A program made the translations under genes and the position numbers. Positions 58,201 to 61,200 of a DNA stretch of 64,000 nt are shown one piece after another; positions within the stretch are counted from its first letter, which is position 1, and every line of letters begins with the position of its first letter. This stretch comes from Macrostomum lignano. Its lineage: Eukaryota. The DNA lies in NCBI GenBank assembly GCA_002269645.1, contig NIVC01000516.1, positions 1 to 64,000 of the forward strand, written 5' to 3'. The notes beneath the pieces were generated by a model. It saw only the letters and a list, made by a program, of their open reading frames with translations, was not told the DNA's origin and did no database searches.

Positions 58201-61200
58201 TAGATCTCACTTTGAAACCCCTGTGAGATTTTGAGGGTTGTGAGATTAAGAGATTCTGAGATTCTGAGATTTTGAGAATTTCCAAATTAAAATCTTGCTC
58301 TGATTGTGACTGTGAAAACCAGACTCTGTGATAATGAATTTTTATTTATACTTTCAGCTGCCTCCACGTGTACCACAAAGTTGACACCTACCAGTACAGG
58401 CACTCGTTCAGCGATTTAAGGGTGAGCAGTTTTGCCTTTTTTGGTTTTTTTAAGAGTCAAATAGGAAACTAATTGTTTCCCCTGTTATCAAATGGTTTGC
58501 CGTATGAATTGCAGGGCATTGCGTCAGCGTCAGCCAGAGATTCAACGCCAAGTAAAAAATCTGCTGGAACTGGGACCGGACAGGTAAACTGATGAGCGGC
58601 GCTGAAGGTTCCTGACACATCTAAAAGTAGATGCTAGAGGTCCCTGACAGATTTTAACGGAGATGCTCGAGGTCCCTGACAGATTTTAACGGAGATGATA
58701 GAGGTCCCTGACAGATTTTAACGGAGATGCTAGAGGTCCCTGGCAGATTTTAACGGAGATGCTCGAGGTCCCTGACAGATTTTAACGGAGATGCTCGAGG
58801 TCCCTGGCAGATTTTAACGGAGATGCTCGAGGTCCCTGACAGATTTTAACGGAGATGCTAGAGGTCCCTGACAGATTTTAACGGAGATGCTAGAGGTCCC
58901 TGGCAGATTTTAACTGAGATGCTCGAGGTCCCTGGCAGATTTTAACGGAGATGCTCGAGGTCCCTGACAGATTTTAACGGAGATGCTCGAGGTCCCTGGC
59001 AGATTTTAACGGAGATGCTAGAGGTCCCTGACAGATTTTAACGGAGATGCTAGAGGTCCCTGACATATCTTGATAGAAGCTGACAAACAATTTTCTCAGC
59101 TTTAACTAAGAAAATGACTTTCCAACTAGTCTACTCATAGTAGAAATCCAGAAAAAACCGTAGAAACAACATCAATTTTTAACAGAGTCGAGAAGTTGAT
59201 CGCAGCCTTCAAGATCGGGGCGCGGGCCCGGTGTTCCTGCTGGTGGACTCGCTGGAGCCGAGCGAAATCATTTTGAGCATGTCGGTGCTGAGCCGGTGGC
59301 CAGAGTCTTACTCAGTCAGCCTGGCTGCGAGTTCGGCAAGAGCCGGCGTAGGTCTCGACGAAGTGCAGCGAAAACCGAGAGACCCACCGAATCCCGGAAG
59401 CTGTGTAGCTGGTAGGTAATTGTAATGGGAAACTCTGGGAGACACCTGGTCTCCATGGTTACCAATTAACTGTGACATCCAATCTCCATGGCTACCAATT
59501 AACCGTGACATCCTATCTCCATGGTTACCAATTAACCGTGACATCCTATCTCCATGGTTACCAATTAACCGTGACATCCTATCTCCATGGTTACCAATTA
59601 ACCGTGACATCCTATCTCCATGGTTACCAATTAACCGTGACATCCTATCTCCATGGTTACCAATTAACTGTGACTGTGGTTACCAATCCAGTCTATTGAT
59701 TCTATAAGACACCGAGTCACCATGGTTACCAATCCAGTCTATTGATTCTATAAGACACCGAGTCACCATGGTTACCAATCCAGTCTATTGATTCTATAAG
59801 ACACCGAGTCACCATGGTTACCAATCCAGTCTATTGATTCTATAAGACACCGAGTCACCATGGTTACCAATCCAGTCTATTGATTCTATAAGACACCGAG
59901 TCACCATGGTTACCAATCCAGTCTATTGATTCTATAAGACACCGAGTCACCATGGTTACCAATCCAGTCTATTGATTCTATAAGACACCGAGTCACCATG
60001 GTTACCAATCCAGTCTATTGATTCTATAAGACACCGAGTCACCATGGTTACCAATCCAGTCTATTGATTCTATAAGACACCGAGTCACCATGGTTACCAA
60101 TCCAGTCTATTGATTCTATATGACACAGAGTCACCATGGTTACCAATCCAGTCTATTGATTCTATATGACACAGAGTCACCATGGTTACCAATCCAGTCT
60201 ATTGATTCTATATGACACCGAGTCACCATGGTTACCAATCCAGTCTATTGATTCTATATGACACAGAGTCACCATGGTTACCAATCCAGTCTATTGATTC
60301 TATAAGACACCGAGTCACCATGGTTACCAATCCAGTCTATTGATTCTATAAGACACCGAGTCACCATGGTTACTGAATTTTCAAAAACTTTAAGCAACAG
60401 CCAATCACACCCTAGTCGCCATGGCAACCCGCAGAGCTGCACAACTGGAAGTCGCCCCGGCTTGGTCAGCAGTTCAAGCGGGTTCGAACCAGCGGGACCA
60501 AAGCGGTCTCCCTTAGCCTTCCAGCCGGCCGGCACTGCCTCCGACTATTCGCCCGCGCTCCGACAGCTTTCGTCTGCTGCCTGGCCTCAGCCAGCCAACT
60601 GTGGGTCGGCAGCGAAGAGGAAATTCTTCCCCAGTTGAAGTCGACACCGGTGCGTCAGCTGTGCTGGGCTGGGCGCTTTACCAGAGCCGTAGCCGACCTC
60701 ATTTCCGCTGTTGACAATGTCGGAGCGAACGCTGGCTGTTTGGCTCAAGCGGAGTCGGCGCTCTGGGGTCTCCTGTTAGGCGATCCGGGTGACTCGAATG
60801 TCCGGCTGAGGCGACGACTTCGAGACGAGTTCCATTTGGCTTTCTACGATCTGCTGGGCCAAGCGCTTGATGGAGCACCGCTGGAGGAGGCTGCTGAGCT
60901 CGTGTCCGCTTGGAGACTGTTGCTGTGCGATGCCAGCACTCGGAATCCGCTTGGTCTGTCCTTTGCGACAACAAAGCAGCGCAGTGAGTAGCTCTTGGTG
61001 TGTGGGTTGAGTAGCTCTTGGTGTGTGGGTTGAGTAGCTCTTGGTGTGAGGGTTGAGTAGCTTTTAGTGTATGGGTTGAGTAGCTCTTGGTGTGAGGGTT
61101 GAGTAGCTCTTGGTGTGAGGGTTGAGTAGCTCTTGGTGTGAGGGTTGAGTAGCTCTTGGTGTGAGGGTTGAGTAGCTCTTGGTGTGAGGGTTGAGTAGCT

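Follow-up and report, generated by a model that had tools for sequence, protein, structure and literature searches.

An intact androglobin of the flatworm Macrostomum lignano with a globin module that has lost the canonical heme residues, and a paralog that keeps the proximal histidine

We analysed a stretch of 64,000 nucleotides from Macrostomum lignano (contig NIVC01000516.1 of assembly GCA_002269645.1, positions 1 to 64,000; hereafter the window), which holds the 3' two-thirds of an androglobin (ADGB) gene. The gene lies on the + strand, from ~44-46 kb to past the window end, and over its exons the DNA is 99-100% identical to public M. lignano protein fragments. Its reading frames are undamaged, its globin module carries other residues at the positions that contact heme, and a second ADGB of the same species keeps a His at the proximal position. 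We consider it likely that the window copy is a functional, lineage-specific ADGB duplicate in which the globin module has decayed to a probably heme-free helical spacer.

The heme positions were placed by MAFFT alignments with 30-40 ADGBs, and these assign the same residues as the initial annotation of the locus, which had put Gln at CD1 (60656), Trp at E7 (60665) and Leu at F8 (60773). The Gln codon (60656-60658) falls in the CD-corner column called CD1 by Hoogewijs et al. (2012), which holds Phe in 29 of the 31 aligned ADGBs, the exceptions being the two M. lignano paralogs (Gln in the window copy, Leu in the other); under the alternative CD1 assignment of Reeder et al., the residue is Val in the window copy and Tyr in human ADGB. 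The distal E7 column is occupied by Trp (60665-60667), a position where most vertebrate ADGBs have Gln and invertebrate ADGBs have Asn, His, Ser or Thr. At the proximal F8 column stands Leu (60773-60775), the middle one of three consecutive Leu codons (60770-60778) that are followed by a Gly-Asp-Pro-Gly loop. This placement is anchored by a common Trp three residues upstream (LWGLL in the window copy, FWRLH in the paralog). No His occurs across the entire C-F region, and the copy has also lost the ES motif that precedes the CD corner, the Pro at the second residue past F8 and a conserved His ahead of the G helix. Among F8-His ADGBs 27 columns are conserved, and of these the window copy keeps 14 and the paralog 19. 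Because the proximal His, the Gln or His at E7 and the CD-corner Phe are all lost, canonical His-ligated heme binding by the window copy is, to judge from the alignment, excluded. It should be noted that most F8-His ADGBs have His-Cys-Pro at F8-F10, where the window copy has Leu-Leu-Gly; heme-regulatory motifs have such a Cys-Pro dipeptide at their core.

The initial annotation had drawn attention to a run of 99 codons without His (60536-60832). Translation of 60536-60835 gives the identical peptide, in which the first His is the last codon. A run of this length is near chance at the protein's His content of 2.1% (P ~0.10-0.12), and the same 662-aa fragment also holds His-free runs of 119 and 103 residues. 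The run alone is thus unremarkable, and the loss of the heme ligands rests on the alignment. The landmarks that had been described as retained, namely the G-helix EFH, the A-helix Trp (AWRRIE) and the IQ motif, are all present.

The globin signature was assessed by re-ordering the helices to A-B followed by C-H, the approach of a study of insect ADGBs (PMC7457136), and searching the de-permuted sequences against Pfam and the Protein Data Bank (PDB). The de-permuted window copy has no match to Pfam Globin (PF00042) and no globin among its PDB sequence matches at E<=10. The de-permuted paralog scores 29.0 bits on Pfam Globin and has 31 PDB matches, of which almost all are globins (myoglobin at E=1.7e-4); Patella ADGB scores 51.1 bits, with dozens of PDB matches that are again nearly all globins (cytoglobin E=1.2e-7). 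Further controls gave 56.9 bits for Glandiceps, 32.8 for a bird, 20.6 for a mammal and 16.9 for Styela, with a cut-off of 22 bits. A PDB sequence search with the fragment encoded in the window returned no match, and the PDB copy searched contained no solved ADGB structure. AlphaFold2 (AF2), applied to the C-H exon alone, predicts five helices (exon residues 60-68, 72-93, 99-114, 122-144 and 149-163; pLDDT 77.5). The F8-equivalent Leu (exon residue 113) lies at the end of the predicted F helix (99-114), in its last turn. The homology of the module to globins is visible through ADGB-to-ADGB alignment only, with tblastn E values of 1.9e-30 to the paralog and ~1e-7 to bird ADGBs. As far as alignment and prediction indicate, the module is helical and colinear with the globin domains of other ADGBs, and is recognisable only by way of homology within the family; the window copy fails all the sequence criteria tested for a heme-binding globin domain.

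The remainder of the protein keeps most of the ADGB architecture. Its upstream exons, all on the + strand like those that follow, were located by tblastn with full-length ADGBs. N-terminal ADGB exons were found with the paralog model P0247 at 46512-46598 and from 46836 to ~46910 (boundaries approximate). Four exons of the calpain-like domain (52339-52560, 52640-52780, 53241-53330 and 53405-53479) give, when joined, 38.5 bits on Peptidase_C2 (PF00648; cut-off 23.8). The 3' exons, from 59183 onward, were assigned by hand from reading frames and GT-AG sites. The exon at 59183-59411 (donor GT at 59412), 100% identical to the M. lignano model P0006, starts Androglobin domain II (PF22068, 101.5 bits). 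The exon at 60435-60983, supported by its splice sites (acceptor cgcag/AG, donor G/GTGAGT), by the Androglobin_II match and by tblastn to bird and paralog ADGBs, carries the tail of domain II together with the globin-derived C-H helices; it exceeds the span given in the initial annotation, and its frame is the only one that stays open along its whole length. A Pro/Gln/Ala-rich linker exon (61519-61692), defined by its splice sites and reading frame, then leads from the H helix to the IQ motif. This exon encodes a Pro/Gln-rich stretch and then a run of 20 Ala; the linker of the paralog is similar in being rich in Ala and Pro, and in most other ADGBs the linker is short.

The following exon (61819-62522), assigned by Pfam and alignment, encodes the IQ motif (~61878-61925), globin helices A-B (~61971-62066, from the ADGB alignment) and Androglobin domain IV (PF22069, 70.4 bits), over which FAP42_B2 also scores 32.2 bits. 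The motif, [11 protein letters not shown], conforms to the consensus [ILV]QxxxRGxxxR and sits between the H and A helices as a putative calmodulin-binding site, and its Pfam IQ score of 14.4 bits is under the cut-off of 20.3. Androglobin domain V (PF22070, 56.5 bits) begins in the exon at 62886-63281, which is 59% identical to the paralog, and continues at 63685-63849, an exon supported by reading frame, splice sites, Pfam and tblastn. The circularly permuted order C-H, IQ, A-B is kept, and the landmarks FGxEE, AFY, AWR, IQ and the A-helix Trp are colinear with those of the 30-40 aligned ADGBs. By every architectural criterion that can be read from the sequence, the protein belongs to the ADGB family. 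The gene had been described as intact, without frameshift, and the open frames and splice sites through the exons agree: none of the tblastn segments contains a stop codon, at least 14 exons are free of stops and frameshifts, and the hand-checked junctions from 59411 onward have canonical GT-AG sites.

We found that this is not the only ADGB of the animal. A word-index search with the window fragment gave M. lignano fragments and a single bird sequence, and one with a bird ADGB gave birds and reptiles alone. An exhaustive HMMER search with the exon at 61821-62522 returned 61 relatives, the closest of which, P0126 (UniRef A0A1I8IZ84), is from M. lignano itself; the whole globin region of this protein is covered by a longer model, P0247. 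This paralog keeps the F8 His (EFWRLHCPF), and a neighbor-joining (NJ) tree of the domain IV-V region places it and the window copy as sisters. In its pocket the paralog has Leu at the CD-corner Phe column and Tyr at E7, a residue typical of trematode myoglobins at that position. The next-closest relative of both M. lignano copies is P0127, a 322-aa ADGB fragment (GCA_046766455.1, JBJNWB010137575.1, L001 335-1303), whose coding sequence is continuous where the window gene has an intron (62522/62886). The idea of an intact ADGB without heme, put forward in the initial annotation, is thus borne out in that the gene is whole, its heme ligands are gone and canonical His-ligated binding appears excluded, and falls short in that the copy is not the sole ADGB of the species. 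For the same reason, the further proposal that the locus separates a ciliary role of ADGB from gas sensing does not follow: M. lignano keeps a canonical copy, and the locus alone does not separate the two.

The divergence between the two M. lignano copies is uneven. By tblastn they are 77-97% identical in the calpain-like exons, 36% in the globin exon, 36.5% in the exon of the IQ motif, helices A-B and domain IV, and 59% in domain V; in alignments, the calpain-like core is 83% identical and the C-H region 31%. Other ADGB pairs with 80-88% identity in the calpain core are 66-86% identical in C-H. In a comparison of 378 other ADGB pairs, identity in C-H follows identity in the calpain core, and a linear fit predicts 62% for the M. 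lignano pair, which lies at z = -3.7 in units of the residual SD. In C-H, the window copy is 20% and the paralog 31% identical to seven invertebrate ADGBs, which are 38% identical among themselves. In domains IV-V, identity to each outgroup is 0-6 points lower for the window copy than for the paralog. On these identities, it is the window copy that has diverged most of the two.

We propose that a duplication within the flatworm lineage gave rise to the window copy, which would have kept its calpain-like domain, domain II, IQ motif and domains IV-V. The permuted globin module would have evolved much faster, exchanging the F8 His for Leu, the E7 residue for Trp and the CD-corner Phe for Gln, and losing its profile similarity as it kept its helicity. 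The product would still be an ADGB-type scaffold whose scaffold domains are presumably under constraint, with the former globin acting as a heme-free helical spacer from domain II to the IQ motif, and any heme-dependent function would fall to the canonical, F8-His paralog. That the window copy is expressed, is free of heme and shares the work of ADGB with its paralog is what we infer from sequence features.

Several observations weigh against this proposal. Globin scores are graded among ADGBs, and the F8-His proteins of the mammal and of Styela also fall under the Pfam cut-off. Recombinant human ADGB globin domain binds heme (Reeder et al. 2024, PMC11077535); since the mammalian domain, a reported heme binder, scores under the cut-off, the absent Globin match of the window copy is supportive and on its own no proof. 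A Foldseek search of the AF2 C-H-only model against the PDB returned no match with E<1 and no globin, a result that is uninformative because the model lacks helices A-B. The paralog's own pocket is unusual in its CD1 Leu and E7 Tyr, so that its heme competence can only be presumed. Finally, the high identity of the calpain-like exons could stem from gene conversion, not purifying selection.

A duplicate whose decay has only begun would also have a degenerate globin exon. If the gene were an early unprocessed pseudogene, the globin exon may have been the first to be relaxed; the globin region is indeed very fast-diverging, the window copy lies under its paralog in domains IV-V against each outgroup, and M. 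lignano genomes are rich in duplicates. Such a pseudogene would be hard to reconcile with at least 14 exons that carry neither stop nor frameshift, with the canonical splice sites, with a calpain-like core still so close to that of the paralog and with domains II, IV and V far over their Pfam cut-offs; moreover, the divergence is concentrated in certain domains and is not uniform. We regard this explanation as unlikely.

It may also be asked whether the module still binds heme, as an altered sensor, through a ligand other than His at F8 (the Cys of AGCL or the His of the G-helix EFH) or by hydrophobic contacts. Helices E-H are predicted with good confidence, and Tyr or Cys stands exactly at F8 in other ADGBs, which hints that other proximal residues are tolerated. 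Human ADGB shows atypical heme stabilisation and a five-coordinate NO complex, a state that cytochrome c' reaches when its proximal His is displaced (PMC11077535). In the window copy, however, the F8 Leu is no potential ligand, and the AGCL Cys, which the initial annotation had offered as a substitute, is exon residue 101. It shares a predicted helix with the F8-equivalent residue, lies 12 residues before it, a distance of more than three helical turns, and appears poorly placed. The column of the EFH His holds Asn, Lys or His in other ADGBs and is no ligand column. The accompanying loss of the CD-corner Phe, the ES motif, the Pro after F8 and the pre-G His, and the lack of remaining similarity to any globin profile or solved globin, make such binding improbable in our view.

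An artefact, in the form of a miscalled base, a mis-assembled exon or an unseen alternative F-helix exon, is very hard to sustain: a single substitution would turn the first codon of the Leu triplet (CTC, 60770) into His (CAC) and the introns are repeat-rich and hard to assemble, but [10 protein letters not shown] is identical in the independent public M. lignano models P0001 and P0003, the divergence spans the whole segment and not one codon, tblastn with the canonical paralog finds one globin-region match in the window and no second globin exon, and the introns beside the globin exon are 23-46-bp tandem arrays without coding similarity. The miscalled base and the alternative exon were rejected on the basis of these gene models, the tblastn search of the window and the intron arrays.

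Loss of the F8 His is not peculiar to this flatworm. All hexapod ADGBs are without the E7 Gln/His and the F8 His, and their globin domains are unrecognised by CDD (Prothmann et al. 2020, PMC7457136); the same loss in bee, ant and louse is attributed there to Hoogewijs et al. (2012). In our sample, 12 of 38 representative ADGBs, the window copy left out of the count, have no His at F8 (P0154, P0170, P0150, P0173, P0140, P0166, P0147, P0133, P0175, P0145, P0162 and P0151). The residue is Tyr in Lampris, Hippocampus, Neosynchiropus and Knipowitschia, Cys in Paramormyrops and Lota, Leu in Pristiophorus (a sawshark) and Octopus, Val in Bagarius and Pelobates, Gln in Hydra, and Gly in Lampetra. Some of these cases may be errors of gene model or alignment (the Pelobates sequence has a deletion, and those of Lampetra and Hydra align poorly); the Tyr of the teleosts stands in an unambiguous E-x-[HY]-C-P-Q context, and a literature search on Tyr at F8 in teleosts found nothing relevant. 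Since the hexapod loss is published and nearly a third of our sample lacks the residue, the novelty of the window copy is reduced, as the initial annotation had said it would be if F8 loss proved common in invertebrate ADGBs.

Given the insects, one more ligand-less ADGB adds little alone to the question whether heme matters for the role of ADGB in sperm and cilia. What is new is the coexistence in a flatworm of a degenerate ADGB with a canonical one, with the divergence concentrated in the globin module, and the finding that about one third of the sampled representative ADGBs lack the F8 His, several teleosts having Tyr. Together, the M. lignano pair and the frequency of other residues at F8 suggest, from sequence comparison, that ADGBs as a family can often do without the globin domain or have put it to another use. 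We speculate, as a long shot, that the two genes form a natural separation-of-function pair, in which an expressed, selectively maintained and heme-free window copy would fill a structural role in cilia or sperm flagella and the canonical copy one that depends on heme or NO, or else that the Trp- and Leu-lined pocket would hold a new non-heme ligand. Since RNA interference is established in this species, such a pair would permit a direct test of the contribution of the globin domain to ADGB function. M. lignano would offer a tractable system in which both states of ADGB can be compared in one organism.

Two further features of the window deserve mention. The introns around the globin exon, all but the one at 61693-61818, consist mostly of tandem arrays (regions 59450-60373, 60985-61436, 62527-62811 and 63331-63645), with units of 33 bp x 6.8, 46 bp x 15, 23 bp x 19.5, 11 bp x 26 and 61/123 bp x 5. 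In two cases the array begins at the 5' splice site or within 4 nt of it, and the 23-bp unit contains GTGAG-like donor sequences. At the other end of the window, on the minus strand, lie exons of a Cys-loop ligand-gated ion channel gene (~900-7640), with Neur_chan_LBD matches of 74.1 bits at 909-1457 and 36.6 bits at 4486-4995.

Among known systems, the second M. lignano ADGB shares with the window copy its species, its architecture, the well-conserved calpain-like core and the sister position in the tree; it differs in its F8 His (RLHCP), its Globin score, its matches to solved globins and the low C-H identity between the two. Human and mouse ADGB (PMC11077535, PMC9249397) likewise have the calpain-like domain, domain II, the C-H/IQ/A-B order and domains IV-V, but carry His at F8 and Gln at E7, where the window copy has Leu and Trp in addition to its CD-corner Gln and shows no globin similarity. 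FAP42 of the Chlamydomonas central apparatus (PDB 7n6g, 7sqc) is the sole solved structure matched by the bird ADGB P0008, through the calpain-like region. This axonemal protein has ADGB-like domains, Pfam annotates no globin in it, and FAP42_B2 recurs in domain IV of the window protein; by analogy, a functional parallel may exist. FAP42 is, however, much larger (2540 aa), contains other domains and lacks the permuted globin and IQ module, and the relationship is limited to some of the domains. A literature search for androglobin with Macrostomum or flatworm returned no report of a degenerate and canonical ADGB pair. The closest published likeness to the window copy is that of the hexapod ADGBs (PMC7457136), in which ADGB is retained, the E7 Gln/His and F8 His are gone and the re-ordered A-H sequence is unrecognised as a globin. 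The case described here differs in that it belongs to the Platyhelminthes, in that the degenerate copy coexists with a canonical paralog, a pair not described in that study, and in that its helical scaffold and permuted order can still be aligned with those of other ADGBs.

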